Source: Diadema antillarum
Lineage: Eukaryota
NCBI RefSeq assembly: GCF_040938485.1
Contig: NW_027271595.1
Location: 310,001 to 374,000 of the forward strand
DNA: 64,000 nucleotides
Direction: 5' to 3'
The notes under the pieces were generated by a model. It saw nothing but the letters and a program-made list of their open reading frames with translations, searched no databases and was not told the origin of the DNA. Numbering within the stretch: position 1 is the first letter of the stretch; every line of letters begins with the position of its first letter. The position numbers and the translations under genes are program-made. Shown here one piece after another: positions 27,546 to 51,604 of the stretch.

Positions 27546-27855
27546 CTTCTGTATGTCCACAGGTGTTCTGTTGTAAACACGGTGCACTTAGTCTATTCTC
27601 CCTGGTACCAATAACCCATTTTTCGGGTCTTGGCCCATGGACTAATAAACAAGATTTCACTTTATACTCTACACACACAAAATCAGTACCGGTAGTAGAT
27701 CTTGTAGGGCCTAGACCTACAGAAAATACATGTAGATCTAGGGGTTTTTTACTATAGCAATTAGTCCATGTTTTATTGATGCATCAGGACTTGCTGGGCC
27801 CTGTTTTATCAAGATAAAGTTGATTGTGAAATCAACGCTAACTTTATCCAACTTG

Positions 27856-27978
27856 GGCCCCGTCTTATAAAGCCTTGAAATCAATCACAAGTCCCCAAAT
27901 CAATCGCAATTTGCATTGCAGCACACATAACAAGAAACTTGTGATTAATTTCTATCACAAGTCTTTATAAGACAGGCC
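27856..27978. mobile_element. ~120-bp Harbinger-type mini-MITE nested near the left terminus
   Basis: TIR GGCCCCGTCTTATAAAG / CTTTATAAGACAGGCC. Confidence 0.7.
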
Positions 27979-29471
27979 CGCTCTAACTTTAAATCTACTG
28001 TACTGTAAGTTTCCGTTTTACGAAGAGACTATTATAGTTATTATAGTTATTGCTGATCACCATGGCCATGACTTATATTATCTTAATCGATATAACAATT
28101 TGTGGACGAGCCTTGCGCCTCCTCATTATCCGAAATTGCGCAATTTTCACTACTGAGTATTTTATGTTCACATGTCGTCTGCGCGGAGAGGAGAGGAAAT
28201 TTTGGTAACCAACGCAACAGAACGTGAGTATAGAATATGCGTTAAATGCGTCATATGGTTACGACCAAAGTTTTCAGAGTTGAACACAAATGTTAATTTT
28301 ATGGATTACATGTGCGTTTAGGCTCCGATGGTGTGTAGACTAAAATTACTTTCAACGTTTGCGCGTACCGCGTCATCGCATCGCGTTGTCAGCCGTAGTC
28401 CCACATTACTATGTACGTGTAATGCCGTTCATGCGGGTTAATTAAGGTTACTTTCATATGGAATGCTGCACACAGAGACATTGAAGCTGGGAAGTTTAAC
28501 GTTACATTCGTTGACAAATGTATTAGACATGATGCAATTTAGAAGCCACTGTCTAATAATACAGAATATATATATACATGGATTCCCCGGAAATCCTGGG
28601 TTTTAGGGAGCTACATTTCTTACTCGATCCTCGATTTTTTTACTTAGCCTGACCGGGCGGGACCGTTGAGCGACGATGTGCGAGCTAGCTAGTAGAGTCT
28701 ATAACGTTAGACTAACGAAAGGCCAAGGCCTACTCGGGTACTCGGCTGTGTCTGTACAGTGCTGTAGGACCTATAAATTTATAGCTTTGTTTTTACTTTC
28801 CGACGGTAGGCACCTAATTACTAGATTAGTTAGAGTATACAGGCCCATATGACTGGTACAGCGCCATAATATTGGTACACCCAGCACAGGGAGTGGGAGG
28901 TGACCTCCCTGGTGCAAAATAAAACCTAACGTTATAATTCTTTTACACACTGAAGCTGACATAGGCCTTTAGCCAAGTGCTAGTCTAGATTAGATAATTC
29001 ATAACCTTGTGTGTAATTTGTATCATGTTTGAAAGATGCAGCCTGTTACCTCTTAAAATTTCACAGGCCTAAATTTAAACAAGGCGCCAGCAGAGGCCAT
29101 GAAAAAGCTTCACCAAAAGTTCTTGTTCTTTGTGACCTTCCCGAACTAGAATTTCAAACTAGAAATTTGCAGGCAAGTTAAGATGCGGTCCTCGTCATTT
29201 ATTTGTAGACCACTGTTTCCCAGTTATGCAGTTGTTGGGCACGGAATGGTGAATAGTCATTTGTGCAAGTGAAGTGTGTTTTTTCAGTCAGACTCATCAA
29301 GTGACAATTTGATGCAATTTCAATAGTCGCGCTCTATCCACACGTAGTGCTCCTCTACAAGTTAGTTAGCGTGGATGTGTCTTCCTGGACATTTTGCTGA
29401 CTAAACCATACAGATAGTCAACAGCAGTCAGATTACAATTGACTAGTGAGCTCACAAAGATGTTTACTTAA

Positions 29472-30026
29472 AGGACAAGTTCACCTTCATAAACATAAGG
29501 GTTGAGAAAATGTAGCAATAATAGTGGAACAATCATTGAAAGTTTGAGGAAAATTGAACAATCCGTTCAAAAGTTATGAATTTTTGAAGTTTTTGTGCAG
29601 CAGCTGCTGGATGAGAAGACTACTGCAGTTTACGATGTCACATGCGTACAACAATACAGGAAAATATAAAGAAAATTTCACAAAATTTCATCTTCTGAAA
29701 AAAGTACACATTTCCTTGACTAGTTACCGACATATGTTGTAGGTAATATTATTCCCCCTGCCTTTAGAAAGAGGCAAGTCAAATGCTCTTTTATTATGCG
29801 AAAAAAGTGAAAATATGTTGAATTTTCTTTACATTTTCTTTATACTGTTGTACTCATGACATCACAAGCTGTAGTAGTCTCCTTGTCCAGCAGTTCCAAC
29901 ACACAAATTTTAAAAATTCATAACTTTTGCATCGATTGTCCAATTTTCCTCAAACTTTCACTGATGTGTTCTACTAATATTGTTGCATTCTCTTAACCCT
30001 TATGTTTATGAAGGTGAACTTGTCCT
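29472..30026. mobile_element. Kolobok-like MITE
   Basis: ~170-bp TIRs AGGACAAGTTCACCTTCATAAAC..., flanked by TTAA and TTGA; same family as 40576-41888. Confidence 0.82.
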
Positions 30027-30344
30027 TTGATAAAATCAGCCTTTCCTCCAGACAGACTGTGACATGATTGGAACAGCTCCATGAATTTTTAGTGGTGACA
30101 GCGTGTTTGAAGCTTGCAAATTAATGAAGTTTTAATATCAGTGCATACAAATTGAAAGTGTGTACGAGTCATGGACAGGCTTAACTATGATACACAGCCC
30201 TGTCGCTGTACACAAGTGTAAAGTCGCAACAGGGCTGTACCGTGTGGACACTACGTAATATTATAATTCTTTGGCGCCAACTCTTGTTTTGAATTTACTG
30301 CACCACATTTGTTACAAAGACTACATAAGATGAAAACTTTACTA

Positions 30345-30530
30345 CAGTGAACTCCCATTACAACGAAGTCCTCGGGACCGGCAATTTTCTTTCGTTATAT
30401 CGAAATTTCGTTATAAAGGAGCAAATCAACAATAAAAATACATAGAGTGGATAATATTGCGGCCTGAATTTTTTCTTCGTTGTAACCGGAATTTCGTTAT
30501 AACCGTGTTCGTTATAACGGGAGTGCACTG
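30345..30530. mobile_element. Tc1/pogo (Tigger-like) MITE
   Basis: TA TSD; TIR CAGTGAACTCCCATTACAACGAA / TTCGTTATAACGGGAGTGCACTG. Confidence 0.85.
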
Positions 30531-33500
30531 TATTTAGCTACCGTTTTCAGCTGTTGATATTGACATAGATATTTAACAACTTAACAAAGATGACACATCT
30601 TTTAATCCTGTACGCCGCAGAAATCGTAGAAGTGAGTCGAAATGTCGGCGCAGCACTTGGCAAAGGGGGCATTGTCGACCGCGTGGGCGTACAAACTCTA
30701 GCAGCACAATTTGCATCTTTCAAAGCTGGTAAAGATTTATTTTGAATCGCCCAGCGAAGATCACAGCATTCCGGGTTAAGATTATACTTTTTGCTCAGTG
30801 TATGTTGCGTGAAGGCTTTCTATGGACTGAAATACCATGCTCATAGTCTAAGCATCTCAATTCATATGAGTGATTCGTAAAATTAGTGATAAGAATGTAT
30901 AAATTTTCAACAGTTTTGTTAGTGTGTGGCCGTGTTCGAGAGGTTTAGTAGATATGTGTACCACACACCGTCAGATGCCGTGCGCTAGCACGACTTCTGG
31001 TCGGGCTAGGACAGGCTGTACCAAACTTGTCACTAAAGAAGTCAACATAAAAAACTATTTTTGGGGGGGGCAAAATTTCTTCTATGAAATAAATTGTATG
31101 CATTTATACTGTCGTTATAATGCCACATAGTTTTCCAAACATACACTCAAGACTTAATCTATTTCGAAACTATAGCACAAAAACCCTAAAGTGTACCAAT
31201 CTTGGGCATGTTAATCTATGTGTCTATACCCATAAACTAGGGTTTAATACATCTCCACTATTCTAGTGGAGCTGTTTGTTTGTTTTTGTTGGCCCAATCC
31301 AATGTCCTAAGATTGGGCCCCATTTCATCAAAAGATGAAATTAATGTAAAAACCAGGAAATCATTATTTTTGTTTTTGTTATGAAATAACTGCATCAAGT
31401 ACATATGGCTTTTTTTTTAATTCAAAGGCTTACAGACATGCTGAAATCAAAGAATACAGGATGTGGATTGACTGATGATGCCAAGGTAAGCAGTTTTAAG
31501 GATCTTTCATCCCAAATAGATAAGCAATTTTTTTTTTCAATAAACAATCTACTTTAAGTACTTATGTGTTTCATATTCATTTTTCTCAAATCTTCTCTTA
31601 ATACAATGACTTTTTTTTTTTGTTAAGTTTATCCAAATGATGGAAAGCTTTTATTGAAGCTAAAATAAGTAGTTGGCCAGTTAAACATCACTTGTGTTCT
31701 CTTGAAACTGTTTACTTACAGTGAGCTGATGGCACTTTTTCAACGAATACAACAGATGGATCATATCAAGGAAGACTGTCCACCTCAATAGTGATGTGCT
31801 GGCCTCTGGGATGATAGGAAAAATGCCATGACCTCTTGAAATAATAGGCCTACTTAGTTTTGTGATATGTAGGTTATTGATATGTGCAAGAAGTTTTTAT
31901 TGATGTGACTTTGGCAATTCTGGAGCAACTATACTGTAGTTTGTCCAATCTAATTTTTGCCAGCATGGGTCATGGTTGTGAATATAAACTGTCCGTCCGT
32001 CATCAATTCTTTTCCTACTAATTGAATGTATACCATTTTATGAACAGGTAAATCGTATATTTGCTTTCCATGTTGCCTTTGCATACAAGTGAGATGATTG
32101 AATACTGCGTCTGGTCTGGCTATATCGCCTTGTGCATTTTCAAACAATTCTTGTGTGTAAATATGCTCTATAAGCCACATTTCTTGTCGGATTTATTCAA
32201 ACTTGCTATGTAGGTTTTTGGGGAGTTAATCTAGGAATCAAAAGCTTTCATTGCCAGCGCTCTCATTGTTCAACCTTTTATAGGATGACATGTCATATCC
32301 CTTGTATGTTATTATATACATACATTTCTTGCCGGATTTTATTGTATCCTGTGACAGTTAACATATTTTACAGCATTCTTGCCTAAAAAGTAAGATGGGG
32401 TATAGGAGACAGGTTAGGGGGGTACATGTACATGTGCTCAATTGCGAGTGCTCTAGGTTTTTTAGTGTGTCAAAAACAGAAGGAATGTGAATGATAAAGA
32501 AATATTTATTGCATTAACTACTCTACACTATAGTAACTTGTAGAGGGGACAAGTGGATCACGAATTACAATTAACACCAATTAGGATAGTGTGGGGTAGT
32601 GGAGGGGGGAGGGGGCTGTGGAATCTGCCCTCTCCCCCCTCCCCCCCCCCCCCTGCATTTCTTGTAATAACTTGGCAACGCAGGAAGACCTCATCCCCCA
32701 CCTTCTTTGCCTCTTTCTTTCAACACATTTTGAGACCAAATTGTAATGTCTCTGTATACTGTGATGAACTCACATAGATTTTTATAATGGCATGTTATCC
32801 CAAAACATTCACAAGTTGGTGATTTTGTTTACATTCTTGTGAGAAACAGTGTGTGTGTGTGTTTGGGGGGAGGGGGACTGAAGTCAGCCAAATCTAGCAT
32901 CACCAAAAAAATTCCAACCTGTTAACGGTTAAAAAAGCTTAACTTCATAACAATGTTAAGGCCTATTCCAGTGATATGCCGTTAATATCTTTTTATTTGT
33001 CTTTCATTCAGGCAACTAACAGTGCAGAGCTGATGGATCAACTTGTTTCAGTTATCCCAACAATAGCAGTGCCTGTACTAGATGAATGTGAGTGCCAGAC
33101 CTGCTCGTCTTTCATTTGCACATAATTAAAAAAACAACAACAATTATTAGCATGGAAAATTTTGTTATTTCAAAGGAACATTTTCTTGAAATTCGACAAA
33201 ATGTAAACATACTTTTGTGAGTATGATAATTGATAGAATATTTATTTCAGTTCTCTGCAATTACAAAAATATTGTTCATATTAATTTTTTTCCCTGTCCC
33301 ATTGAATACCTCAGATGTCACAAGAAATATTAAAGAAAAAACCTTTACCATGCGAACTTAATAAGATAAAATTATGCATTCAGCCACTAGTTTAATGTCA
33401 ACAACTTCAACCAATGAATTCTGTGTGTTTGACTGTTTTTATGACGCTCATTATCATTAAAGTGGATACCTTTCTGTACTGAAGTCAGAAACTTTAATGA

Positions 33501-34119
33501 CCATATCAATTACGCTGATGTCAAGGAACCAATTTAATGCAAATATTTTTTTTTTTTAAAGTTACCTAGTGCAATGGACCAAAATTACGCACTGTATAGT
33601 GAAATATAGGACACACAACTCAAGTCAGCTGGAGCTCCGTAAAGAGATTTTATATCTTTGGCTGAGATGAGGAATCTGCCGTTAACTTATTGCAAGATGC
33701 TTAGAAAACACTGTGATGTGTTAAAAAGTCTACAGGTCGTAAAGAGGAATTTAATCTTTGATTGATGAAGATCGCTTCTCAAATTACTTAGATATCCAAA
33801 AACAAAGTGCAACAAAAGCATTCTAATGGGGGTTTTGACCCACTTTTCAGTAGCATTAATTTGTTTTGGATAATTTTTGACATTTCTTAGCAAGTTGTTA
33901 TCAAAAACAATTTGTATTGCTTAAAATGCTCTTTATTCTCAGAGTTTCAATACTCTATTACATCTCGTAAAAGGTTCATCCAAATAGTTGAAAACAAGTA
34001 GTCCCATTTAAACCATTCCATTAAATTGGACACCTCTATTGATTACATTTTTTAATAAAAAGATCTCTTTCCATCACATTAGCATTCATTCATTGTTAGT
34101 GTTTTATCTTAAGCTTTAA

Positions 34120-34712
34120 AGGGTGTGTACAGTTCTGGTTGAAGTGAGGATTTAGCTTTTAACGTTTTGCGAGATATTCAGATAACACTCTATGAGATGT
34201 CAAAGAGCATGCAATTCTTAGGTGTGCTGTAAAAGTGGATATTTTCGCGCGACTAATTTTTCGCGCTTGGCTGGGTAAGAAGAGTTTCGCATGTTTATAA
34301 TTCCGCGGAATAAAGACATCACGCACAGGAACATATTACGGCAAGCAAAAATATTTGCGTGCTTTTATTTTCGCGCTAGTTTCTGGTTGCGCGAAAATTT
34401 CAACACCACGAAAATTTCCACTCTTACAGTATCAAAAGTTTATTTGATGAAAATCGGTTTTGAAATGGCTGAGATATCCAAAAGGTGAAACGAAGAGATC
34501 CTGATAAAGTTGTGGCCTGTAGTCTTTTATCATTACACCTGTATCACTTTTTTGGATATCTCAGCCATTTGAAAACCAATTTTCATCAAATAAACGTTGA
34601 ATCCTTAAAATTACACGCTCTTTCATATTTCATAAGAGGTTTCTCATTTTCTCACTTAATTAAGAATGTTAAAAACATGAATCCCCACCTCAGCCAGTAC
34701 TGTACAGTCCCT
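34120..34712. mobile_element. Kolobok-like MITE containing a nested Tc1/mariner-type MITE (34227-34429)
   Basis: TTAA-AGGGTGTGTACAG...CTGTACAGTCCCT-GTAA. The inner element reads CTGTAAAAGTGG...CCACTCTTACAG-TA and is related to 51605-52060 and 55189-55428. Confidence 0.75.
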
Positions 34713-37700
34713 GTAATGTGAAATATAATTGGGATGCAATATGTGTGTAATATTTTCATAAATGACACTCCCTGACTTGAATCATTCGTATTCTCTTTCT
34801 GCAAAGTTGAGGCAACTCCACCGGTGCATCCTAAACCATGCCAGGCAACATCATCATGTCAGCAGCAAGTTCTGTCATCACAACCTTTGCAGTCATCAAC
34901 AACAACACCAACACAACCAACACCAACACATAAACCACCAACATCAATGACGTCAACCAGGAAATCACCATCAGAACCAACCCTACATGAAATTCAAGTT
35001 GAGCTCCTGAACACCAAACGTGAGCTGCTCTCTGTTGAGAAGCAGGATTTGGAGGTTAGGAGGGAGGAACTTAACATTTTGAAAGACATTCGTACCTTGC
35101 TTAACAATCTTGTTTCTCAGGAGGATTGAATCAGATGTGCTCCTCTTTTGGCAGTATTAATAAGCCATTTTAGTTCTTGTAAACATTGGTACAAATGACC
35201 TTTCCTTTTATCTCATTTAGTTAGGCTCTTCACTTGTTTTCAAAGCAGTATAATGCATAAGCTTGCCCGATTTAACAATATATGGAATTCGTGTTGAAAC
35301 AAATAATGCAATTGCATTGAGAACATGTGATCAGATTACTCCAGTAGTTTTCAATTTCACCGGCATCCATGTCATTGTTTTTATAGAATGTAATAACAGC
35401 ATATTTCCTGTTATATTGCAAAATACTATTTTTTCTGTTAAATGGATGTGCTGGCAAGAACCATTTAGATAAGAATCACATGAATAATCATCGCATCACA
35501 GATGAGTACCTCAACGAATTTACAAACCATACAGATTGTTGGTACAAATAACCTTTTCCATCTCTTGCGAAAATTGGATTTACAATTTAGTCTATTCATG
35601 TGATCAACATCAAGTACAAACAAAACTACCAATACCACGAGTTCTTCATTTTCTAAAGACAGCTTTTCAGCTGTTTGCCATTTTATTTAAAGAAACATTA
35701 AGCTGAAATGATGTTGTTAGTCTCTCATTACTAGTCAACATTTCAGTAAACTATGTTAAGCAAGAGGTGATTGAAAACGTCTATTTCAATAGCATACCCT
35801 TCAGATGAAAATTGTGAATGGGATCGACCCTTCATTCTTTATAAGTCAGCAGGTTAGTACAGAGTAAATGCAACAACATTTAATGAAGGTGTATCATAGC
35901 ATGTAAAAGTCAAGTTTAAGTCCACCAAAGCAGTTGCCTTCCTGCATGAATGGAAAAGAGTTTCCTCAGTAAGCAGATATAGAGACTGTGTCCCATCATG
36001 AAGTGATTGAAGTTATAATGTAGGTATCATACCTTTCCTGAAATGGTTGCACATTTTACTACTCAAAATCTCTTACTCTGTTCACATAAACATATCAAGT
36101 GTGTGGCAAATATCCCTGAAGATGCATTGGCAGTGATGAGATAATAATTCATAAGGAGCATTGAGTTAACTGCTCAACAATGTGTGGTTGTGAAGAAGAA
36201 TGAGATAGATATTTCCCACAAGCAAGATTTCGCGCTCAGCTGAGTAGGATGGATTCGGCATATTTTCAATTTTGAGGAACCAGGGCGTAAATTACTGGAA
36301 CATTTGGCATGCAAGAATAGTTGGTTGCTTTCATTTTTGCACTAGGGTCTGATTGTGAAAAGTGTGCTGAAATTTCCACTTTTACAGTACTTCATTATGT
36401 TATGACCTTCCATGAGTTTCTTGCATTGTTAACAATATAACCAAGTGATGTCTTCTATTGTACATGTAGTGATTATCACAAACAGTGCATGACGCAGCTC
36501 CAATATAAACACCTTAGCAAGAAGTTTTGTAAAATAATAATTACAGTAAACATTTGCAGAACACCTTTTTACACTGGATACAAATGCCCCTTCCAAAATA
36601 ATTTTTTTTTCTTCTTCACACTTGCCAAACGCATCTATCAATTTGGTAATCAGTTTTATACCACCAATGTGGATAAAGTTGGTCTGGTGAACTGGTCATG
36701 TGCTATACTGATACAATCAAATGACATGACGCTATATGCAAAGAAGTTGTTATATGCAGTTGAAATATGACCGAAATCATATATAAGTTGATGTCCACGT
36801 TGTGATGTAGATGAATTCAGTGGTCCAGTCCACATCCAATCTTGCTTTGTTTCCATAAGTTGTTAGTGGCTGAAGAGAATTTGACAGAAATAGAGAAATT
36901 ACTATTGATTAGATCATTATTCAGACATGATGATTACCCTTCAATATAAAACCAACACAATTTATCAAGACATTGACTTCTAGTTAAGACAACGTTTTGA
37001 AAAGAGCTGACTCTGCGCTTTAAGATGATGTACCCAGTAATTCAAATGGACTCTTCCAACCTACTTAATTTTTGGAAATATCGAACCTACTGTGGAATAG
37101 TCAACTGAGAAAAGAGGCTCTGAAATACAGCATCCATTCAAGTGCTTAATTTACACGAAGCTGTGCTATCTATTTAATGAATGGAACAAAAACAGGATGT
37201 ATACCACCAGGGCAGTAACATTGAAGAGTTTTTCTGATTAAGCTGAAATTGATCATACTCAATTAACACATTATTTCCATAGTTATTGGCAACCTTTAAA
37301 GGTAATATCATTATTCTTTCAAATATTGTTAAAGTTCAAAGTGAAGAGTGTGCTAAGGATTTCAAAAAATAAAAAGGGACCTCTAAAATGTACCTCATCA
37401 CACTGCTGTACAAAAAAAGGAGATTTTAAAAAAAGAATTGCTGATAACAAACTTTTCAGTTTATTTCATGATCGAAAGCTTAGGACTCATAGGAAAAAAG
37501 CTCTTTGAGAAAATATGAAAAACTCAAGATTGACTTTGTTGTTCAATTTCACCTTTTCTGAGTCCTCATGTAAGATCAAGGGGGTGCAATTTTCTATTGA
37601 TATTGCCAGCTGGTTATTGTAATGCATGTTCACTTACATGCAAATAACCTGTAACCTTACAAAAGTAACTTCACATTGGATGGTTGGACGATTTCAGTAT

Positions 37701-37845
37701 AAAGATATGGTTCACGTTTATGTTAAGGGATAAATATTTACGCCCAACCAAAAAGTGTCAATGGAGGTGTTTGATTTGATTGTTGTCTGTCTGTTTGCCT
37801 TTCCGTCCATCCTTTTAAAAGGAATTGACTTCATGTACAGCATAA

Positions 37846-38594
37846 GGGCAATTCTGCAGTTAGGTGAACATGACGTGGATAAAAGAAATGTGCCTCTTTA
37901 TCTTATTCTTTAATTTAGGTATCAATTAATGCTGTGGATGTTCACCAATCACTAAGGTCTTTCAAATTCAGGTTTTATTTTTCGTATTTATTGATTTTGC
38001 GAGATCTAAAACCATCATTTAAAATGTACATGTGGGACTGGGGAGCTGAAATTCACTTAAATGCCAATTACAGTGGGTTGCTTTGAAATTTTTTCCTTAA
38101 ATTTTTGCTAAAAGGTAAAAGATGAATACATTGAAGTACTCCAGAAGTCATGCAACATTTTGTCAATTATAAAAGGGTGAAATGACCTGCGGAATTACTC
38201 AGGACAAATGTAACGTTACTAACCGTAACATTACTAACCACGCATTTGGGGGTCTAGCTAATAAATTATCGGTTGAACTGCTAAAAATATTTGCATGAAC
38301 ATTTGTCATGATGCAATAATTGAAATCAATGCAACACTTTATATGAACTTTTTGTTACAAGACATTGATTTTTTGGTCATGTCTTTTTTCGTAACGTTAC
38401 TAACCAGCCCTTCTAGTTGCCGTAGCAATTCTAATATTTATTGGATTGTACTCATTCTTTTCTATATCATAGACCTGGGAAGGATGTACATGTCTTAACA
38501 TGATTTTGACTTGAAATGAATAAATGGTGATTTAGTAGTAAAAATACATTTCTAAATTTCTTTAAATGTAACGTTACTAACCGCGGCATTGCCC
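37846..38594. mobile_element. Non-autonomous element with GGG...CCC termini and 4-bp TSD (Sola2-like), copy A
   Basis: TIR GGGCAATTCTGCAG / CCGCGGCATTGCCC with TSD ATAA/ATAA; inverted homolog at 57938-58709. Confidence 0.8.
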
Positions 38595-39327
38595 ATAAGT
38601 GTTTCAGATGCCCTTTTCAAATGTGGCTTATGTATGTAATTATGTATTGGTGGAAGAAATTGTGCCTTTCAACTGTTGGATATACCTGCTGAAGTTATTA
38701 GGTTCAAGGTCACGTTTTGAATATGCCAGAAATTACCCCATATCTCTGAAATACATTTATTTCAGAAAATAAAGTGTGTGCATGTATTACCATGTAAAAA
38801 AAAACTGGAGGGAAAGTTTTGAGTCATTGGGTAAAACTGATTCTGATTCTGATTGTAATTTCTTGAGCCATTGGGTTCATAAGTAAAAAAAAAAGAAATT
38901 CCTAAGGTGAAAATGTCAAAATTTGTCATTCAATCCTCACATTTCCCATTATGACTTCTTTTTTTTTTGCCATAAATTTTTACCCTGTTATATCTCTTTT
39001 TATCTGTTATATCTCTTTTTTAAAAATCTGTTATATCCCATTCACGTACAATTTCTTTTACGCGATTGGGCGAGACACATTATGGCACTTGCCTTGTCTT
39101 GTATAAATAGCATCAATGTGTGTTAAAGATACATAATGAAATGCCAGATAGTTGCAATTACTCTATATCGAATGTTATTATTTGTATCTTAATTGTTATA
39201 TTATTTTTATTAATATAATTGTTTTTAATATCTTCAATGATGTTCTCTACACCTTTAAATTATTTAGTGCAAAATAATAAATGTATATTTATATCCTGTA
39301 TATTATATATTTATTCCTGTATCTTAA

Positions 39328-40027: not shown

Positions 40028-40575
40028 TTAAAAGTATAGTTGCAGAAAGTCTGTTATAAATATTGGAAATTATCAGTAAAGCGATCTTGTGAAAGAAGAT
40101 GTGGGCAAGAGGTAATTGTCAAGTGAAAATGATCAAATCCTCTAATACTAGCCCTCTGCAACAAATGAGTCATCAGAATGAAATCTGTAGTATTTCAAAA
40201 ATGTTTGAGCACGTCATACATTTGAGGTTGTGGTAACAATATTTCAAGTCTCTCATTTTGAAGACCAGACAAATTGGAAAATAATGTAATATTGCAGAGT
40301 TATACTAGTCACAACGGCAGCATTTGTATTTATGTGTTAAAACCCACAGAAGAATAACTGATTGCATCGTTGTTTAACTTAATCATTTCTTTCAAAAAAA
40401 ATATATTGTGTTTAACCAAACCTCTAGCCAGATATCTCTCTGCAAATGGAAAAAATAGAAAAGCACATGCCTCCACCAAGCCAGGAACTCATTTCCACCC
40501 TTACACGCATGCAATTTCCAGAAATGCTATTACTAGTAAAAGCCTTTTGCTTATGTCATTTTACGCTGCATTTAA

Positions 40576-41572
40576 AGGGAAGGTAAACCCAAAGAGCAAT
40601 GTGGATTGAGTGAAAGCAGCAACATTAGTAGAACACATCAGTGAAAGTTTGAGGAAAATCGGACAATCGATGCAAAAGTTATGAATTTTTAAAGTTTTGG
40701 TGTTGGAACTGCTGGATGAGGAGACTACTAGAGGTTATGACGTATGAGAGGACAACAATACAAAGAAAATACATTGTATAAAGGAAATTCAACAAAAATT
40801 CATTTTTCTAGCATTATGAAAGAGCACTTGACTAACCACTTTCAGAAAGCAGGGGGAGTAATTGCTACCCTTAACCCTAAAGGGGCCGGGCTTTTTTGGC
40901 TATGCTCAGACCGGGGGGATGGATTCCGCCCCCGATCGCGATGAAATTTTGCATGCGTGAGACCCGAGTCATAATCTACAAGATTGTGTCATAAGATTTT
41001 TTTGAAACAATCAATTTCTAATTTTAATTAATTAATTGTGCAAATTAAGCTCAAGATGATATTTTAGCCTAATTAAAAGCAATGAGAGTCTAATTTTTGA
41101 TCTGCAAATCTGTTTTAGCATATTCAACAATTGTACATCACAAAAACTTCCAAATCTCATTTCAATTCTTATGTATTTTATTGTTTTCAGAATTTCTTAT
41201 GTATTTCTTTGTTTTTCAACTTTTGTTTTTTCTTTGTTTTTTCATTGGAAATTGTCACTGACCACTTTTCTACCATAATTAGCACAAAATCAATCAATGA
41301 AAGTGATTAATTGTAAAAATAATCAGGTTTTTATGACTTTCATGACAGAGCACTGTTTTCCATAGGAAATGTACACAAAATCACAAAATTGTGACCGTTT
41401 TGGGGCGACATTCCGTGACAAAAATGGGCGTGGCTTCGCAAAAGTATGCGCGGACGTTGCAAATTTGGTCTCAAAAGTTGCGCGAGACTTGAATGAAGAA
41501 AGTCAAGAAGTCTCGCGACGAGGCCTTCTCGCGTTACAGAATTATAGCGCGAAACGTCGAGGGGGGCGGATT

Positions 41573-41607
<35 letters not shown>

Positions 41608-41888
41608 CACTTTTAGGGTTAACATGTGTCAGTATCAAGTTGACAGAATTTGTAATTTTCATGAAAAATGGATTTTTGTAGAATTTTCTTTATATTTTCT
41701 TTGTATTGTTGTCCACTCATACGTCATAACTTCTAGTAGTCTCTTCATCCAGCGGTTCCAACACCAAAACTTTAAAAAGTCATAACTTTTGCATCGATTG
41801 TCTGATTTTCTTCAAACTTTCACTGATGCGTTCTACTAATGTTGCTGCTTTCACTCAATCCACATTGTTTTTAGGGTTTATCTTCACT
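40576..41888. mobile_element. Kolobok-like MITE interrupted by a piggyBac-like MITE
   Basis: TTAA TSD at 40572-40575 and 41889-41892; long arms homologous to 29472-30026. Confidence 0.82.
40875..41618. mobile_element. piggyBac-like MITE, copy B (inverted relative to copy A)
   Basis: TTAA-CCCTAAA...TTTAGGG-TTAA; reverse-complement homolog of 39328-40027. Confidence 0.88.
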
Positions 41889-42295
41889 TTAAGGGCAGAC
41901 CTTACTGTGTTGATGTTCAGGTAAATTTACATTTTTTGTCAAAAGATTAAAAATTCTTCAAAAATGCACATAAGTGTCAGGTCTTTACCAAAATCGAATG
42001 AGGAGTCTGTTGTATCAGTATTGACTTTCTATGCAAGTTTCATGTTTGTCCTTTCAAACCTTATTAGCAATTTTGCAAACAGACAAACCAACGCTGATTA
42101 ACACTTAACCTCCTACTTTGTAGCCGGAGGCTATAAAGAAAATAAAAGGCGAAAATATGGCTAATTTAGTCTTTGTTTCACTGTCAAGGATGTCATGAGA
42201 TTTTAGTGAAATGAATAGAAATGTAGCAAGTGAAAATGTAAGATTTCATTTGGTGATTACACTACACTGAGTATGTCTTAAATTGAGGAACTTGT

Positions 42296-42493
42296 TAAAT
42301 ATGTTACTGTCAGTTTTTGCATTGGAATTAGATATGTTACTGTCAGTTTTTGCATTGGAATTAAATATGTTACTGTCAGTTTTTGCATTGGAATTAAATA
42401 TGTTACTGTCAGTTTTTGCATTGGAATTAAATGTTACTGTCAGTTTTTGCATTGGAATTAAATATGTTACTGTCAGTTTTTGCATTGGAATTA
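42296..42493. repeat. 33-bp minisatellite, 6 copies (one 31 bp)
   Basis: Unit TAAATATGTTACTGTCAGTTTTTGCATTGGAAT, near-identical, with no spacers. Confidence 0.97.
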
Positions 42494-44618
42494 CCTCTCT
42501 CATTACTGATGTACATATGGAGTAATAAATTTTAATGTATATAATATGAATGAATTAGTCTATCAGTCATATTGATTTCTACACTAACATTGGATTTGGT
42601 GGTTCAACTCTTAACAGATAGGTCATATTCATAAGCTGCTTAGAGTAACTTCTCACTTGTGTGCAGCAAGATATCGAACATATTCTGCACGGGCAGCAAC
42701 ATCAGACAGGTCACTCTCTGGGATGGCATCCTGTGGAATGGCATCATGTTGCAGCTCTGCCATCAACATGTCATCCATGACTTCATCAGGTCCACCACAG
42801 TCCTTGCTCAACTTGAACAGGATGCAGCGTGCCATTATCACCTAATGGGATAATAAAATTGTAGCACATTTATGTTTATGGATGAATCAAATATGGATAT
42901 GATCTTTGGAGGAATGATGTTACCGTACAGAAACATGATGTAGAAGTTAAGAAAGATTGTAAATAATCTGTGAAGAAGTCACAAGTTTTACATGTATTTG
43001 GATGATACCATTGCTTGACGAGGATAAAGATTGCTAGTATAATACAGTTACATTAGTTGGCATAGACAAATATATACATGAATGAGATTTTTTTTTTTCT
43101 CATGTTCACTGAAAAAAAAATGCAAGGGTGATGATCATCGAAGAATTAATTGGAAAAAAGATATCAATATTACTCATGTTTTTGCACTGTATCATTTGAA
43201 CTTTTTTTTTGCAGGGGATAGTGAATACCATTATTAGTAATTATCTATTATTACCTTGCAGGCTTTTTCTGGCCTCATCTGCATTCCGTGTCCAAGAAGA
43301 CATCTGAATTTCTGTTTCAATTGCCCATTCACCTGCTCAATCAGGACCCTTGTTTTGATTTGAGCACTGTTTGATGAAACATACATATTAAAGAATGTTT
43401 GAATTGCATAATTATGATATTCACAAGTATTTTTTTTTTAATAGACCGTCCCTTTTATGAATCTGTAGATAAAAAATGAAAGCACAGTGCTTATGACGTT
43501 ACGGTTTACCTTTCCTATACACACAGCTTTGATAATGAGTTAGTTTCATTGACACAAGTCACATACTACATTAAGATGATTTGTATTGTTTTCTGAGTTT
43601 ATCTAATTTTATTTCAATACTAGAGTAGCATAGACGCTGTCATTTCATTTTTTTTAAACTGGTTTTTATGTACACCGTATCTTCCAGCAAGGTCACTCAC
43701 TTGTTGTAGGCTTCTTCCTGCTGGTTTTGTGGATTTTCGAAGGGAGTCAGGAGCCATGGTTGGAGAGGGTAGCCCGAATCCCCTAGAAGTACTCCTTCCA
43801 GCTGTCCTCTTCCAAACAGCTCTGCTAGCTTGCTGGTCTGTTTTCAAATGACATCAATGTTAAAAAAATTGATAAGAGGTAAACATTATCATAAACAACT
43901 ATAACATTTTCTCCCTAAAGAAAGAATGTTTGTTTAAAATAAATGTGGAGAAACTTTAAAAATGATAATAACAATAAAAAATTTGCCAACACTAAATACA
44001 CAGATTCTAAGCCTCTAGGAACACATATGGCTAAAGGACAGAAGAAAATACAAAACCTGATTTCATTATATTTCTGTGCCTCAAAAAATAAATCATTACT
44101 TCATCTCAAGTAACATTGAAGTTAGCATTTAAAGAGTACTAGTCCCAAAGTGCTTATTCATGTTGTGTGTAAGAAGGCTATCTGTTTTAGTTCATTATAT
44201 ATTGTATTTACACTAACATCTAATTTATTATTTCTTGTTGTCAACGGCTATATCTTTTGAAGCTAACTCTGAGAATTCTACTATCATGCGTTGATCCAGG
44301 CCACTTTGCTACTACGCTTGTGATGCGATATCTGCTGTTGCAGACCAACTGCACATTTATGCTATGTCTGCCCTTTCGGTTGATGTATATGTGCTCATCT
44401 GGGCCAAGATGTGCTCCATGTAGTCCCACATGTGTCCCATCAACACAGCCGAGTACGTCAGGGAGACCTGCTACTCTCTGAAAGCCTCTCTTTGTTTCCC
44501 CACATGCTTCTCTTGTTCATGGGAATTTGATCACCTGTAAATGAAGAGGAAGTGTATTGCCAAAATTAGGCTTAAAATTGAATTAATTCACAAGAAAGAT
44601 TGTCAGAATGAAGCATTA

Positions 44619-47600
44619 TAGTCCGGCAGCCAAAAGCCATTTTTTTGGTTGAAGTACTTTTTCTCTGATATAGTTTTTTTCTCTGTTGATTATTCATCTT
44701 TGGGGTCTCTTCAATGATATTCAGGTGGGTGTGGAGCTCTCACCCTTGGGCAATTTTAATTATTCAAAATGGCGTCCAACATGGCCGCCACACAGCCCTC
44801 AAATTAGGAAAATGTATGTAATCATGTGTTTCAAGTGCTACTATACCAATGTTTAAATTGGAGCATTTGTCTAAAGGTCCAACAAGTTGAATAAGATATT
44901 TTTGACATTTGTTGCAAGACAGTTTTTATGGTAAACATTGAATAATTAGCTTAAAATCCCTAAAATGCATAAGATAAATACAAAATGATATGGAATCGGG
45001 TTTGCGATGTGTGATTGTTGCTGGAGGGACATGTTGACCTGAATGTTTGGCAGAAAATCGTAGAAACTATTTTACTTAAAGGACCTGAGTAGATGGTTGC
45101 CATGGATACTTGCTCTTTGGCTGGTTGCAGACATGATATTTAACATACGAATGTATAGTCCCGGGATGTCTTAGAATGTATATGAGTAACCTGTGTATAT
45201 AGGAAGCTCATCAATCTGTATAAGAAACTGACTACATGGTCGCCATGGAAACTTGCCTTTTTCTTGATGTTATACATGTTACCATGAAAGTATCATCTTA
45301 AGAGATAAATGCCTACGATGTCTTGAAACATCATAAAATCATATACATTTACTGGTACATAAAGAAAATCCTATGATATCAAGTAGGGGAGATGCAGGAG
45401 AATTGAGCCACTTTTTCTAGTTTTGGATATGTTTCCTAATCAATCCTTGCTCACAACAAGTGTCTGTTACCAAACTGAAGTACAACTATAAACCTGTCTT
45501 GTAGCTATGAAAATTTCTTCTAGGTCATTGCCTAATTTTAAAAAATAAAAACTTTCTCTAGAAAAATAAATGTCAACACTCTGCAGTGTAGGGAGAGTTG
45601 AGCCATGTTTTAAGGAGAGTTGAGCCACCTTTAGAAGATATGTGCCACTTGTTTGAGAGTTAAACCACGACGTCAAACCATAAAGATTAGATTAAAAGAT
45701 CGGCTTACAAGTAGCCAGAAATAAATCTTAGCTAACAAAATCGGTTTTATCCTAAATTCAGGCATAGAACCATCTGAAAATTTAAGAAGTTCAAACACTC
45801 GTAATATGCACTAGTGTCTTTATTCTTAAACAGAACCACTCATATTGGGGCTGGCGCTATGTTTTAAAAGTGAGGCGACCTGGTTTATATTTCTGGTGCC
45901 ACTTCTGGGTTTTACTGATAAGCAAAAAAAAAAGGGGGGGGGGGAGAGGGCTTAACTATAAATTTCTGATGCCACTTCCGGGGTTAATCGGCTGAATCAG
46001 CTGACAAGAAAAATAAAAGAGAGGGGGGCCTATCTCACTTTTCTTGTGCCTCTTAAGTATAAAATAGTGTGGGGATCCTAGTGGTAAGACCCTATATATT
46101 CCTATATATTATGCCCCCTCCCCCCCCCCAAAAAAAAAAAAAAAAGTTGAGGCGAGCCCTCACCCCTTATTTGCGTCGGCCCTGTGTACTACAGTGAAAA
46201 GTACAATTTTGCGTCATGATATTTTGCAATGGAACTTCTTCAAGTTTGATTGAGAAAGGTTTGCGGTGGCACCACTTTGTTTGGCAGAAGAGACTAGAAA
46301 GAGGGGAATTAAAGAGGGAAGCGACATATGAGGGTTGTAAGGAGGGCAAAAAGTGAAGAGTGGGGGATAGTAAGGGGTCGGAAGTTGAAGTCAAGTACTT
46401 GTGGAGACGGTAGAGAAGGGAACAGAGAGAGTGGTAAGGAAGAATAGAGTGAGAATCAAGTAAGATATTTAAGATTTTTTAAGTTTACTCATCCCCTCCC
46501 TATGTCTTATAGATACTATAATCCCTCGCATAATGAAGCAAAGTAAAAATAAGCTACTCATCAGAACTGGAACCTGAATCTTAAAAACTAACAAGACCTA
46601 ATTTAGAAACCTACATGTACTACAGAAATGAAACAAGAAAAGTAAGTCATAATAATATGTTATTTTTGTTACAGAAAATTATAACAAACACATATTTTCT
46701 TTTTTTTTTCAGATTGTTTGTGCCTTCTACACTTGTATAATATCAACTTCTGTTAAATTAATATGCATGACTCATGAATAAAAACTTCAGGCAAGTGCAG
46801 TAAGATAATTAACAAAAATCATGAAACAAGCTGGATTATTTCATTCTCAAGGATTGTAGTTTATAACAATGTATGTATTGATGTCAATGTCATGAAAACA
46901 TGTGAAAGTTATTTCATTATAGCCTTCACCTTGTTGCACATAGGAAGTCTCATTTTGAAATGTTGTTTTCACATAACACCTAATGAACGATTTTGAGGAC
47001 ATTTATGCAGGTTGTAATATTGCAATGTATGTTCCAATAATCTGACAAAACCATGAAATTATTTCACACTGCATGATTTCATTCATATCATAACTTGGAA
47101 ACAAATGAAACCATGCACATCACCATGCAGCTAACAGTCGGTTTATCCACCAATACGTATTACACAAAGATGTTGTTAGTCTCTTACCATCTAACTTAGT
47201 GTCAAACAATTTTGTTGCAATGTATATGTATGCATGTTATGGGACTGTCCTTGAAAGTGACATTGAGCAGTTACTATGGCAACCAGGACATATCAACTTC
47301 ATATAACAGAGGGAGGTACCGGTATGTGCAACCAATATAGGCATATGTAAGACCTGAAATGTGATATGTCACATTTTCACATCATTGCTTTACTGCAGTT
47401 TAACCCTTCGGTACGTATTCACAATTAAATTCACGTCTAGGTTGCTATGGCAACTATAAATATAAATAAAGGCTAGATTAATGGTTACTTCATTAAGACT
47501 AAGGGGTATGCAGGTAATTGGTATTTTGTGCATGTCGCACAAATAACAAGCATTTTTGTGTATTTTGCATACTTTTCTAACTTGTTATGAGGTTTGTTTC

Positions 47601-47900
47601 GATGTATTGATGGTTACCATGGCAACCAGATTCTACTTATCAACTAAAGACATTATACTAATATTACCGGTCTTTTAGTTGAGTGTTCTAATTGAAATAC
47701 TAGTTGTTTCAGTGACATTTTTCTGGCTTTTAGGCTTCATGGCGGCCATTTTGGACACCATTTTGAATAATTAAAATTGCCCAAGGGTGAGAGCTCCACA
47801 CCCACCTGAATATCATTGTAGAGACCCCAAAGATGAATAATCAACAAAGAAAAAAACTATATCAGAGAAAAAGTACTTAGCCCCCTCGGCTGCCGGACTA
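44619..47900. mobile_element. Academ-like non-autonomous transposon (3.28 kb) in transposase intron 1
   Basis: TAGTCCGGCAGCC termini plus ~140-bp subterminal inverted homology; 3-bp TSD TTA at 44616-44618 and 47901-47903. Confidence 0.82.
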
Positions 47901-49097
47901 TTAATCAATTTCAACATTTTCCTAAACATTTGATTAATCAAAGAGATACATTCTATTACTCTTCTCATAATCAAACAAGCATTCATACTGTTTTGCATCT
48001 TTGAATGTGTTATAAACGTGAATAGTCCAAATACATTGTACATTTACTGCTTGACACATGTAGGTATGCTTTCTTAATGAAAAATCAGTTGGATTTTTTC
48101 TTATGATTGTAATGACTGTCTTTAATGATGAATATAATGCAAGTGGATATCATTCATACACTACATTCGATTAGATAACCAAACTTAGTAATGATACCCC
48201 ATCACTTGGTAGTAAATTGAAACACAAGCTACGGTAAGAGATAGAAATTATGTCATTTCTATTACATGTGTACTGCAGTACCTTTGAGATATGTACTACA
48301 TGTAGTAGTTGAAAAAGAAAAAAAATAGTTATTATAGGTAGACCTATGGGGCATAAACTGAGTAAAACGACCCATTATATTTAGAGTACAAAATATGTTA
48401 TATGTTTCAAAGCTGGACTATAATGTAGTGCTTCCATGTTGTTCTGCAAAATTTTCTAGAAAAAGTTTAATGGTTATGAATTACCCCATGTAATGTTTAT
48501 AATTCAGGTGAAAACAGACATCTTTGTGAGATATTTCACGTTTGAAATGACCTAATATTTTTGACCTGAATTTAATAGCAGGAGATATAGGCTTACTATT
48601 ATGTCATAAATGTGAGGAAAAGCTGAAGTGTGAGGACAAGCTCTGGGGGTAGAGGGTTTACATGTTTCTTTGTGTCCATTTTCTACCTTTTTTAATTTTG
48701 AGTGTTGTTAGTGGGGGGGGGGGGGGGAGGGGAAAAACAAATGTAACCAAAAGTGATTTTTTTTTTTTTTTTTTTTAATGTACAGGCGTGTATGCTATGC
48801 ATACAATATTGGAAGCAATGAAGGGGAAAGTTGCAGATATATAGGACCGGTGTTGTAGGAAAACTGTGATTTGATAAATTTTCTCTTATCTCTACTGAAA
48901 TTCAGAATGGGGGACTAGCACCATTAAATATTGGTGTGATGGGTTATACGTGTATTTCCAGTTGACGTGTAATACATGTGCAAGTAGTGGCTGTCATGGC
49001 ATATAGTTATGGATGTATACACCCGCTTTTAAAAAAAAAACTGTAGTGGGGAGGTGGTGGGGGGGGGGGAGGGAGGGAATCGACCCCTTACTAGAAC

Positions 49098-49832
49098 CAA
49101 GGAGGTTCTAGAGAATGGAGTCACAACCGTCTTATTTCCTTTGCTAGATGTTCGAAGCCGCCTCTCAAAAATATTTAAAGCATGTGCCAAACAAGATCTG
49201 CCATGCAGATACGAAGACGATTGACTCGTGTCTCATTGCATAATCACCAACCACTTTCAAAGGAAGATATGTCTTTGTGATGGTAATCACTTTTCGCTAT
49301 CCCTTCTTATAAACGGTAAGTGGTACACACACGAAGATGCGCGAATAGAAATTGAGCAAAAAATGCTGAAATAAAGATGAAAATTACTCGACTGGGCATA
49401 CCCTGGCACTAATCTGATATATCTATCAATAAAGAATTATACTTGAAGATCATTCCATATTAATTCATTTGTGGAAATTAAGCGGAAAATTGATAAAACC
49501 AGCTTTCCAGGATGGTACAGTTTTAAACATTTTCACATGATACAGCTCTGATTTACGCTTTTGCACAAATTTCTGGACAGGATTATCTTTTGTTTTACAT
49601 GGTTTATCATTAAGTGAAATTTCATTTCATTTAATGAATAAATAAGCAAAATATGGCCAACATTATGATAATGTTCAAAATGAATCTTCCGATTGCTCAG
49701 CAAGACGGCGGCTTGGAACATTGATCATAAAAGGCACAAGTGCACCTGTGGAATTCTTTTGTACATCAAAAGAAATCTGACCACTGTTTGCATAATTACA
49801 GCCAGTTGAAACTATTGTATAAAACCTCCTTG
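49098..49832. mobile_element. P-element-like non-autonomous transposon, copy B
   Basis: CAAGGAGG TIR with 7-bp TSD CTAGAAC on both sides. Confidence 0.85.
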
Positions 49833-51604
49833 CTAGAACTATGCAGCGCCACAGATCGCATATGTAAATTGCACACCGTATTACCGCGTATGGCTACGTG
49901 GGCCCGGCCGAATAGCATGTATGGGATCAATGGACTAGGGGTTTTAGCAAGCAGAGAAACTCTGCGAGACACCGTCACATGTGTAAGCAGCTGCAAGAGG
50001 TGATCGTCATTAAGTGTACCATTATTCTTATATTTCAAGAATCTACCATACGGCTGGTTAATTTATCGTATAGCCTGTAGGCCTAGATATAGTTATATTA
50101 GTTAAATATCAAAAATGCTGTAGCTTCTCACTTGTGTTTTCAATTTTAGACAGATTGCATCTGTCACCCGGCTCACGGTTGTTGATGCCGTTGCCCTCGA
50201 TATCCCATGCATAGTGGCAGTTGCATCTAGCACACCTCCAGTCGCGTAGAAGTTCTATGTGGTACAAACTTGCAGAAGAGGTGACAGTGCCTGGCTGCGG
50301 TTGGTGTCATGCTTAATTGTTTGTTCCAGCACCAACACCAACTCGATGAGACCCTCGTGAGAAAATCTGTATTTCCTCCACAGATCTTCCGGACTCCAGT
50401 TCAAAGGATTTGTGCGGTGTCGGACGACTCTTTCCCTTCTCAGGGCCCTTCTTGCCGCTTGGTCAGGCAATATCACAACTGCTACAGCAGCCATCTTGCT
50501 TGCTTCTCTGACTACACTTGGATAGAGTTATTAGGTGATGTGGATCAACGATTAAAGTTACAGTTGATTTGTGGAAGTTAGAGTGTATTTTGTAAACTTA
50601 CCAGTTGATTTGGAAGGAAGTTAACTTTGATTACAACTCATGGTGTCTTGATAAAACGGACTTGGAGTTGATTTGGAAGTTAATCATAGATTAAGTGGAC
50701 TTGGAGTTGATATGAGAAGTTAATGATCGATTATCTTGACTTAGAGTTAATTTCATCTTTTGATAAAACGGGGCCCTGGACTTTACAACTCCAAATACTA
50801 AGTTATCCCTCGTGCACTTTTATTTAATCTTGGCCTGTGGCCTCCGAGAATCAAAACAGCACTTGTGAAAACTTTATTTTGTTGTTCTATAATCTAGTTT
50901 AGTACATAATAGAGCATGCATTAATTGTATGTTTCACGTTCACTGGGTGTATGTGGTTGACTTAATTGTGCATCTGTAAATAGTACTTGTGACATCAATT
51001 TCTTCCTAGCTATTGCCACACAAGTAAGCATTACAATATAAATTTACTGGACCCAACAACATCAACAAAACAATATACACAATCATAATAAGAGAATTAG
51101 GATAACCATTATTATTTTATGCAATCAACCTTGATGTCAAATTTCAGTACATTTTGCACATAGATTATCACAGACTGTAACACAGTAGGAGCACAGACTT
51201 GACTGAGACTTGTTGCTGTTATGACACCAACTCCTGACTATATCCTTGGAGAGTATTATGAAAAAGGTATGAATTGTAGTACAGGTTGTGTAAACTGTAG
51301 TGGTTTCATGTGGAAAGCACAAAACTAACATTAGCCAATTTCGAGGTTTTCAATATCTTACTTACATGTAGGTCCTTTAGAATCATATTAAAGATGTAAA
51401 AGAAAAGGAAGACGATAGCAACATCTGAAAGAAAGCCTCTTGATGGGGACAAGGTCAAAACATTGCAGAAAAAGCACACACATAAGTGCTGGTTAATCTT
51501 AATCTTAGTTGAAGTTGTTTGCTTTTATTCTGATTTTTAGTTATTTTAGTTGTGAATATTTATGCCTTAGGTACTGGCGTCAGCAGTCTCACTAAAATCA
51601 TATA

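Follow-up and report, generated by a model that had tools for sequence, protein, structure and literature searches.

A 23-kb PIF/Harbinger element in Diadema antillarum with a disabled transposase gene and abundant nested repeats

RESULTS

Ends of the element and target site

We examined a 64,000-nucleotide stretch of the Diadema antillarum genome (assembly GCF_040938485.1, contig NW_027271595.1, positions 310,001 to 374,000; here called the window), in which an element of 22.98 kb extends from position 27797 to position 50775. Its left end, GGCCCTGTTTTATCAA, begins at 27797, and the reverse complement of that end, GGCCCCGTTTTATCAA, finishes at 50775. The terminal 16-mer occurs exactly twice, at these two ends and inverted relative to each other; with up to 2 mismatches, it occurs four times in the window (0.06 expected by chance). 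The left terminal inverted repeat (27797 to 27825, plus strand; GGCCCTGTTTTATCAAGATAAAGTT...) and the right one (50747 to 50775, minus strand) are identical in 15 of their first 16 bases, and, with a 2-base indel tolerated, the likeness reaches ∼27 bp. Terminal inverted repeats of PIF/Harbinger elements measure 25 to 50 bp (PMC9179366). A CTG lies on each side of the element (27794 to 27796 and 50776 to 50778), as expected of the 3-bp duplications (TWA or CWG) of this superfamily. Both boundaries are also family boundaries in the genome: the left 59 bp had ∼204 candidates, with matches breaking off at 27797, where copies of a ∼1.5-kb family end too, and the right 182 bp had ∼393, with matches breaking off at 50775 (these and other repeat counts are lower bounds, with the best 40 matches per query scored).

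The sequence flanking the element is another repeat. Among the matches listed, 12 other copies of this host repeat are uninterrupted, so that the left flank (to 27791) adjoins the right flank (from 50776), the two overlapping by 2 bp on the CT of a single CTG. Relative to these paralogous empty sites, the left junction has 4 additional bases (CTTG). Since both termini are exact family termini and the flanks are contiguous in the 12 paralogues, the sequence identifies 27797 and 50775 as the left and right limits of a single PIF/Harbinger insertion, which agrees with the original prediction that matching inverted repeats and a CTG duplication bracket a single element. Just inside the right end, 2.4 copies of a 40-bp direct repeat (50658 to 50753) are probably bound by the element's proteins.

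Transposase gene

The transposase gene lies on the minus strand, begins 281 bp inward from the right end, and comprises five exons, the number originally predicted. Exon 1 (50132 to 50494, 121 codons) was placed by homologue alignment and sister copies. Exon 2 (44268 to 44534) carries the motifs VIKFP...DGTH...NRKG...WPGSTHD, exon 3 (43701 to 43837) carries GDSGYP, exon 4 (43255 to 43366) holds the third part of the DDE_Tnp_4 domain, and exon 5 (42653 to 42841), located by tblastn with protein P0018, follows an AG acceptor and includes the stop codon. The exons were searched singly, by reference, and not as a joined spliced model; searched in this way, exons 2, 3, and 4 matched positions 1 to 62, 75 to 104, and 108 to 150, respectively, of the DDE_Tnp_4 profile (PF13359) that characterizes PIF/Harbinger transposases. 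Exon 2 scored 46.7 bits (E = 3.3e-12; cutoff, 24.8 bits). Each of the five exons could be aligned gap-free with a 351-aa D. setosum protein labeled "putative nuclease HARBI1," in an order collinear with 351-aa urchin homologues, and all splice sites are GT-AG with consistent reading phases. The block from 47816 to 48149 was rejected as a further exon, as homologues run through exon 1 unbroken to 50132; the block is intron backbone common to sister copies.

Among public proteins, the nearest to the DDE exon comes from S. purpuratus (XP_030833634; at most 69% identity); the best paralogue in the D. antillarum genome, in which this transposase lineage is single-copy, is 62% identical. Many of the closest DDE-exon paralogues lie in short open frames (97 to 147 aa), which would be consistent with splitting by introns. 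If these paralogues are indeed intron-split, the intron-richness of this transposase is not special here, and the original view of it as unusual loses its footing.

The reading frame is interrupted twice. A TAG in exon 1 (50255 to 50257) is found in both haplotypes at a codon that is TTG (Leu) in sister copies, and a TGA in exon 2 (44517 to 44519) is confined to the window haplotype, with CGA in the allele and in sister copies. In the allelic contig, exon 1 lacks 34 bp, exon 2 has two deletions (2 bp and 4 bp), and exons 3 and 4 are the sites of insertions of 0.86 kb and 9.2 kb. Because sister copies have sense codons at the positions of both stops and the allele carries these deletions and insertions, the transposase gene is, by its sequence, a pseudogene. 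An autonomous element would have both reading frames intact; with TAG and TGA in the transposase, this element is a former autonomous copy that is now dead. The transposase gene is still recognizable, as had been predicted, but it no longer encodes an intact protein.

These lesions also bear on whether the two genes form a domesticated host pair kept for a cellular function, as with HARBI1, the domesticated Harbinger transposase of vertebrates, and its partner NAIF1. A single-copy transposase lineage whose best paralogue is only 62% identical in the DDE exon would suit such a pair, as would the annotation of the second gene as a protein by NCBI. A domesticated gene of the HARBI1 kind, however, would have shed its terminal repeats and kept a frame preserved by purifying selection. 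The present element still has both terminal repeats and the target-site duplication, its transposase frame contains stops, and the other haplotype adds exon 1 and 2 deletions and kilobase-scale insertions at exons 3 and 4. With disabling lesions in both haplotypes, domestication is effectively refuted.

Second gene

A second gene on the plus strand is convergent with the transposase, and the two stop codons are 7.5 kb apart, as originally described. It corresponds to a three-exon, 148-aa NCBI model (P0161) labeled "uncharacterized protein": exon 1 (MLKSKNTGCGLTDDAK; 31438 to 31485) ends at a GT donor, exon 2 (33012 to 33087) has an AG acceptor and a GTGAGT donor, and exon 3 (34807 to 35129) encodes a Pro/Thr/Gln-rich stretch and a coiled coil and includes the stop codon. 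Exon 3 has no Pfam domain, and its genome matches are confined to this locus and its allele. A tail made of a low-complexity stretch and a coiled coil presumably resembles those of NAIF1/MSANTD-type proteins, in line with a lead from the Atlas language model, in which the likeness of the second gene to Myb/SANT-like proteins was weak and below threshold (0.86).

The gene had been predicted to be multi-exon and Myb/SANT-like, and its exon structure stands; for the Myb/SANT domain, the language-model lead is the only sign. No Myb-type Pfam domain was found in the second gene or in the 55 plus-strand ORFs of at least 24 aa between 31000 and 35300, in 138 further ORFs, or in sister-copy ORFs, and tblastn with the Myb domains of the related proteins P0007 and P0070 gave no match. 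In Smith-Waterman comparisons with two Myb references, the score was reached by 8 of 500 and 458 of 500 shuffles, and the match lay inside a T-rich intron. The second gene of PIF/Harbinger elements encodes a Myb/SANT-like (trihelix/MADF) DNA-binding protein. Myb-like partners are very divergent (PMC9179366). If other Harbingers are a guide, the second gene here would be a candidate DNA-binding partner of the transposase. The conserved block from 31626 to 31830 was also considered as THAP-like, a reading that was discarded because Pfam searches of the window and of sister copies lent it no support. The 3-bp CWG duplication and the lack of a Pfam-backed THAP domain also separate the element from the ISL2EU branch, which is defined by a different accessory gene and accessory domains.

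Family, sister copies, and the internal terminal repeat

The two ends of the element are shared with a high-copy family of ∼1.5-kb nonautonomous copies with CWG duplications. In eleven family copies (∼1.3 to 3.1 kb), both end types are paired, mostly between CTG or CAG flanks; the sequence held in common with the element is only ∼150 bp on the left and ∼180 bp on the right. In two sister copies, C1048 and C795, the right end is continuous with transposase exon 1 and intron 1; in a third, C591A, a CAG-flanked left end of its own continues into the interior up to 32104. No sister copy was found that has both ends and the transposase, so the left and right halves are linked by evidence from this locus and its allele together with the paralogous empty sites.

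The left arm (27797 to 31314, plus strand) is collinear with C591A and consists of ∼1.9 kb of family backbone and nested repeats (27856 to 27977, 29306 to 29416, 29465 to 30029, and 30190 to 31010) that are missing from the sister copy or multicopy. It is followed by an internal copy of the terminal repeat (31316 to 31344, plus strand), complementary to the right end at 28 of 30 positions. One reading of this arrangement is that the original autonomous element ran from 31316 to 50775 and later recruited the 3.5-kb left arm, after which the composite moved as a unit. The internal 30-mer is closer to the right end than the true left end is, the second gene begins ∼120 bp past it, in a mirror image of the transposase near the right end, and the same arm with its internal repeat is present in C591A, which lies at an independent CAG site. 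Nevertheless, all six genome matches at 31316 run across it and none ends there, the flanking triplets, TTG versus CTG, do not form a duplication, and the break in the host repeat lies at 27797 and 50775 rather than at 31316. We therefore rejected 31316 as a true left end, given the six crossing matches and the host repeat split at 27797, and consider a recruited arm improbable. It is likewise doubtful that the family as a whole is a composite Harbinger carrying ∼3.5 kb of extra DNA by means of an outer left end that replaced the internal repeat. Such a composite, if real, would represent alternative-end transposition enlarging an animal Harbinger and could account for the long left arm common to an independently inserted sister copy.

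Nested repeats and length

Nested multicopy repeats make up at least 11.4 of the 22.98 kb, a larger total than the ∼8.2 kb first tallied. Transposase intron 1 contains a full-length 3.28-kb nonautonomous transposon with 164-bp inverted ends (44618 to 47899), which is missing from C1048 and C795 and has several full-length genome copies at 84 to 89% identity, and a 740-bp high-copy repeat (49094 to 49834; 3,175 candidates, 92 to 95% identity). The spacer between the two stop codons (35130 to 42652) is a mosaic of nested repeats (35170 to 35596, 36206 to 36396, 36936 to 37583, 37843 to 38598, 38959 to 39101, 39343 to 40031, and 40441 to 42138), with a 33-bp tandem array at 42295 to 42493 and short low-copy pieces in between. 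At least 63% of it is multicopy; the low-copy remainder (∼2.8 kb) includes two pieces, of 609 and 539 bp, that are present solely here and in the allele. The haplotypes differ by four large insertions within the element, ranging from 0.9 to 9.2 kb, and the segment from 40579 to 41887 is missing from the other haplotype.

The original prediction raised the possibility of an undescribed Harbinger lineage that is giant or carries cargo; most of the ∼15 kb that remains once insertions are subtracted, including the 7.5-kb spacer, would then be native. Typical Harbingers are a few kilobases long, and even the upper bound for the backbone here exceeds that size; moreover, low-copy sequence accounts for ∼2.8 kb in the spacer and ∼1.9 kb in the left arm, and the left arm recurs in an independently inserted sister copy. 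Against native cargo, multicopy repeats take up at least 63% of the spacer, and its residual pieces, when examined, tended to reveal more of them. The search for cargo between 35.2 and 42.6 kb came up empty, with no Pfam domain in spacer ORFs of at least 40 aa; there were no Rfam matches, and no other copy of the spacer was found in the genome. The right arm is 6.2 kb in the window versus ∼1.6 kb in a sister copy. A giant lineage is thus very improbable: the element reaches 23 kb only because younger transposons inserted into it make up at least half of that length. For the backbone, the upper bound is about 11.5 kb, and the probable size is 6 to 9 kb.

DISCUSSION

The locus very probably holds a single PIF/Harbinger DNA transposon of an ordinary type, an old copy that was inactivated and enlarged by later insertions. 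A formerly autonomous element would have been inserted by cut-and-paste into a CTG of another repeat, duplicating the CTG, and would originally have carried two convergent genes, the five-exon DDE_Tnp_4 transposase and the second gene past the internal terminal repeat. The copy would then have died, with a TTG-to-TAG change in exon 1 arising before the haplotypes split and further lesions gathered independently by each haplotype. Nested transposons would then have piled up passively in the introns, the left arm, and the intergenic stretch, so that an element of no more than about 11.5 kb, and probably of 6 to 9 kb, grew to 23 kb.

The element is an ordinary, uncurated representative of a known kind of transposon. 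Like the animal PIF/Harbinger elements, including zebrafish Harbinger3_DR and sea-urchin Harbingers related to Harbinger-Snek, it has a DDE_Tnp_4 transposase, terminal inverted repeats of ∼27 bp, a 3-bp CWG duplication, a two-gene layout, and abundant nonautonomous derivatives. Its right half-site, CTGGACTTT, compares with the Harbinger3_DR target, AAACACCWGGTCTTT (PMC3016246), and Harbingers have already been reported in S. purpuratus and H. pulcherrimus (PMC8437027). Unlike those elements, this copy is dead, is ∼50% nested repeats, has a second gene without a detected Myb/SANT domain, and carries a long left arm and an internal terminal-repeat copy. HARBI1 belongs to the same transposase fold family and lends its name to the RefSeq label of the urchin relatives; in contrast to HARBI1, the element described here retains its terminal repeats and duplication, is broken in frame in both haplotypes, and belongs to a mobile family.

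The general importance of the locus is small. It documents an uncurated Diadema Harbinger family, with one dead transposase copy and hundreds of ∼1.5-kb relatives, that can be used in repeat annotation of urchin genomes. It also cautions that later insertions can make an ordinary element look giant, and the four insertions by which the haplotypes differ inside one element illustrate how fast such a build-up proceeds. The ∼1.5-kb nonautonomous family was presumably mobilized by this transposase lineage. Its CWG duplications are shared with Tourist-like MITEs and other nonautonomous Harbinger derivatives, whereas its copies are longer (1.3 to 3 kb) than classical MITEs and have an interior unrelated to that of the element.

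Termini and target site

The element (window positions 27797-50775, 22,979 bp) begins with GGCCCTGTTTTATCAA at 27797 and ends with the reverse complement, GGCCCCGTTTTATCAA, whose last base is 50775; CTG adjoins both ends. The window held four matches to the terminal 16-mer at ≤2 mismatches, against 0.06 expected by chance, and the two exact ones were the claimed ends. The inverted repeat reaches ∼27 bp if a 2-base indel is allowed. In the 1.75-Gb Diadema antillarum assembly, the right-end 182 bp drew ∼393 candidates (85 to 88% identity) that stopped at 50775, and the left-end 59 bp drew ∼204 (∼91% identity) with their first base at 27797. Both ends are termini of one family. The 40-bp subterminal repeats near the right end (50658-50753) are putative protein-binding sites.

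Another repeat family, here called the host repeat, flanks the element on both sides, with 184 genome candidates for the right flank (50776-50930) and 1036 for the left flank (up to 27791). At 12 loci, left- and right-flank alignments lay on the same strand and overlapped by exactly 2 bp. Examples of these paralogous empty sites are C2919 (72395-72485 and 72484-72638), C1026 (38372-38462 and 38461-38615), and loci on contigs C198, C23, C653, C664, C212, C171, C1134, C1386, and C617. As read from alignment coordinates rather than an aligned junction, the uninterrupted host repeat is ...AGGA-CTG-GACTTT..., with a single CTG, and in the window this CTG is present on either side of 22,979 bp. Both ends therefore bound one insertion and were not inserted independently, in agreement with the original prediction, which had cautioned that the CTG match might merely reflect a CWG target preference; with one CTG in the paralogous empty sites, the duplication is real. 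The left junction reads AGGACTTG-CTG (27787-27796), with four extra bases (AGGA-CTTG-CTG versus AGGA-CTG in the 12 uninterrupted copies) that may be a private indel of this host-repeat copy or the footprint of an earlier insertion and excision there.

The element is a Harbinger-type cut-and-paste transposon that inserted once, at CTG. Its CWG duplication and right half-site CTGGACTTT are like the zebrafish Harbinger3_DR target AAACACCWGGTCTTT (PMC3016246). Harbingers are defined by a two-gene layout, a 3-bp duplication, and 25- to 50-bp inverted repeats (PMC9179366), and sea urchins are already known to carry them, some with just one of the two genes (PMC8437027).

Non-autonomous relatives and sister copies

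Among fetched loci, eleven elements of 1.3 to 3.1 kb (mostly ∼1.5 kb) joined left-type and right-type ends in the correct orientation, flanked mostly by CTG or CAG. They resemble the window element over only ∼150 bp on the left and ∼180 bp on the right and are therefore non-autonomous elements that form a family with these ends, probably spread by the transposase lineage of the window element.

Partial sister copies covered one half of the element or the other, and none was found to hold both. Those on C1048 and C795 ran from the right end through 50053 at ∼88% identity and then joined 48197-47900 straight to 44617-44481. The copy C591A had its own left end beside CAG, in an unrelated flank, and was collinear with 27980-28668, 29102-29275, 29414-29471, 30030-30089, 31087-31250, and 31259-32104. 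Two copies of the block comprising the left arm and second gene lay 16 kb apart in C591:380001-420000, with the same LINE 3′ fragment at the same point, and so arose by segmental duplication, not transposition. An internal terminal-repeat copy (31316-31344), 28/30 complementary to the right end and ∼120 bp upstream of the second-gene start, was also conserved in the C591 and C962 sister copies; it could be a further protein-binding site.

Nested repeats and element size

We counted a segment as nested if it was absent from a sister copy or the allele or had many genome copies. Nested segments lay at 27856-27977, 29306-29416, 29465-30029, 30190-31010, 32144-32466, 34114-34716, 35170-35596, 36206-36396, 36936-37583, 37843-38598, 38959-39101, 39343-40031, 40441-42138 (a repeat itself holding a 1.3-kb insertion missing from the other haplotype), 42295-42493 (a 33-bp tandem array), 44618-47899 (a full-length member of a 3.28-kb family), and 49094-49834. 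Together they amount to at least ∼11.4 kb, or at least 50% of the element, based on the best 40 matches per query. The region contains no stretches of N.

The spacer between the two stop codons (35130-42652; 7,523 bp) consists of ∼4.75 kb (63%) nested repeats and nine remaining fragments, two of which (609 and 539 bp) occur only in the window and its allele. No meaningful Pfam match was found in ORFs of ≥40 amino acids on either strand of the left arm (27797-31314) and spacer, and no Rfam family was found. From the right end to transposase exon 2, the distance is 1.6 kb in a sister copy versus 6.2 kb in the window. Given this difference and the repeat tally, the backbone is at most ∼11.5 kb and probably smaller: ∼1.9 kb of left arm, ≤2.9 kb of second-gene region, ≤2.8 kb of spacer, ∼3.1 to 3.8 kb of transposase gene, and 0.28 kb of right end. 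The proposal of a giant or cargo-carrying lineage thus fails; the element is a new, uncurated Harbinger of an already known type and not a new variant, and no cargo was detected in it. Transposons that arrived afterwards occupy its non-coding parts, and the two haplotypes still differ in them.

The 690-bp repeat at 39343-40031 is 96 to 98% identical to its best 38 copies and therefore young (a query containing it drew 6341 candidates); its family looks currently or very recently active. The segment at 44618-47899 is a non-coding transposon bordered by TAA, with inverted ends of 164 bp (TAGTCCGGCAGCC...), and several full-length relatives share 84 to 89% identity. A repeat with long G or C homopolymer runs occurs four times in or beside the element (27480-27540, 32590-32660, 41560-41610, and 49040-49090).

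The second gene

On the plus strand, the predicted multi-exon gene is present with three exons (31438-31485, 33012-33087, and 34807-35129) and canonical splice sites, and its Myb/SANT-like identity found no support in domain searches. The last ORF, used in a word search, matched a single protein, P0161 (148 amino acids, "uncharacterized protein [Diadema antillarum]"), at 100% identity, and in the genome the last exon occurs only in the window and its allele. No Myb/SANT, MADF, or THAP family was detected in P0161, in 55 plus-strand ORFs of ≥24 amino acids (31000-35300), or in sister-copy ORFs, and Myb domains from fusions with related transposases, used as tblastn queries, gave no match to the gene. 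In a protein-language-model Atlas, P0161 fell near clusters with Myb_DNA-bind_5 or Myb_DNA-bind_4 at scores of ≤0.86, which is no more than a lead by the Atlas calibration. The P0161 tail, in which a coiled coil comes after a Pro/Thr/Gln-rich stretch, is of a type seen in Myb_DNA-bind-type proteins. The interval 31626-32104 is conserved with the C591 copies, carries stop codons in every copy, and might contain a decayed DNA-binding exon; the gene may formerly have encoded a DNA-binding partner.

The transposase gene and its decay

We modeled the minus-strand transposase exon by exon, from homology and splice sites taken from the sequence. Its five exons (50494-50132, 44534-44268, 43837-43701, 43366-43255, and 42841-42653) total 1068 coding nucleotides (355 codons), with GT-AG introns throughout and consistent phases. 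Pfam DDE_Tnp_4 matched three pieces (profile positions 1-62, 75-104, and 108-150), and the 351-amino-acid D. setosum "putative nuclease HARBI1" (P0018) covered the whole gene without gaps in tblastn, which bears out the predicted five-exon structure. A HMMER scan with the 91-amino-acid exon returned 5239 relatives, and the nearest named ones were likewise "putative nuclease HARBI1" (69% in S. purpuratus, 67% in Lytechinus, and 55 to 58% in Diadema). Two public relatives, P0007 and P0070, appear by eye to carry an N-terminal Myb/SANT-type domain and are either true fusions or merged models of two Harbinger genes. The best genomic paralogue of the DDE exon is only 62% identical, so the lineage survives only at the window locus. 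Many of the closest paralogues sit in open frames of only 97 to 147 amino acids, suggesting that Harbinger transposase genes interrupted by introns are common in the D. antillarum genome.

The locus also occurs, at 97 to 99% identity, on contig C1325, which we treated as the other haplotype. Codon 80, within a conserved L-x-F-Y-A-T-G motif, is TAG in the window (50255-50257) and C1325 and TTG (Leu) in three sister sequences. A TGA at the start of exon 2 (44517-44519, after VIKFP) is CGA in C1325 and the sister copies. In C1325, exon 1 has also lost 34 bp and exon 2 carries deletions of 2 and 4 bp; an insertion of 0.86 kb interrupts exon 3 at ∼43790, and one of 9.2 kb lies at the margin of exon 4 (43385-43394). 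The gene is a pseudogene, and the independent decay of both alleles rules out its being kept for a conserved host function.

Inside the element, four large insertions differ between the haplotypes (40579-41887 and sites at ∼43390, ∼43790, and ∼49425), which indicates very recent transposon activity. The window haplotype alone carries the first, a 1.3-kb element with inverted ends of 206 bp, and C1325 alone carries those of 9.2, 0.86, and 7.3 kb.
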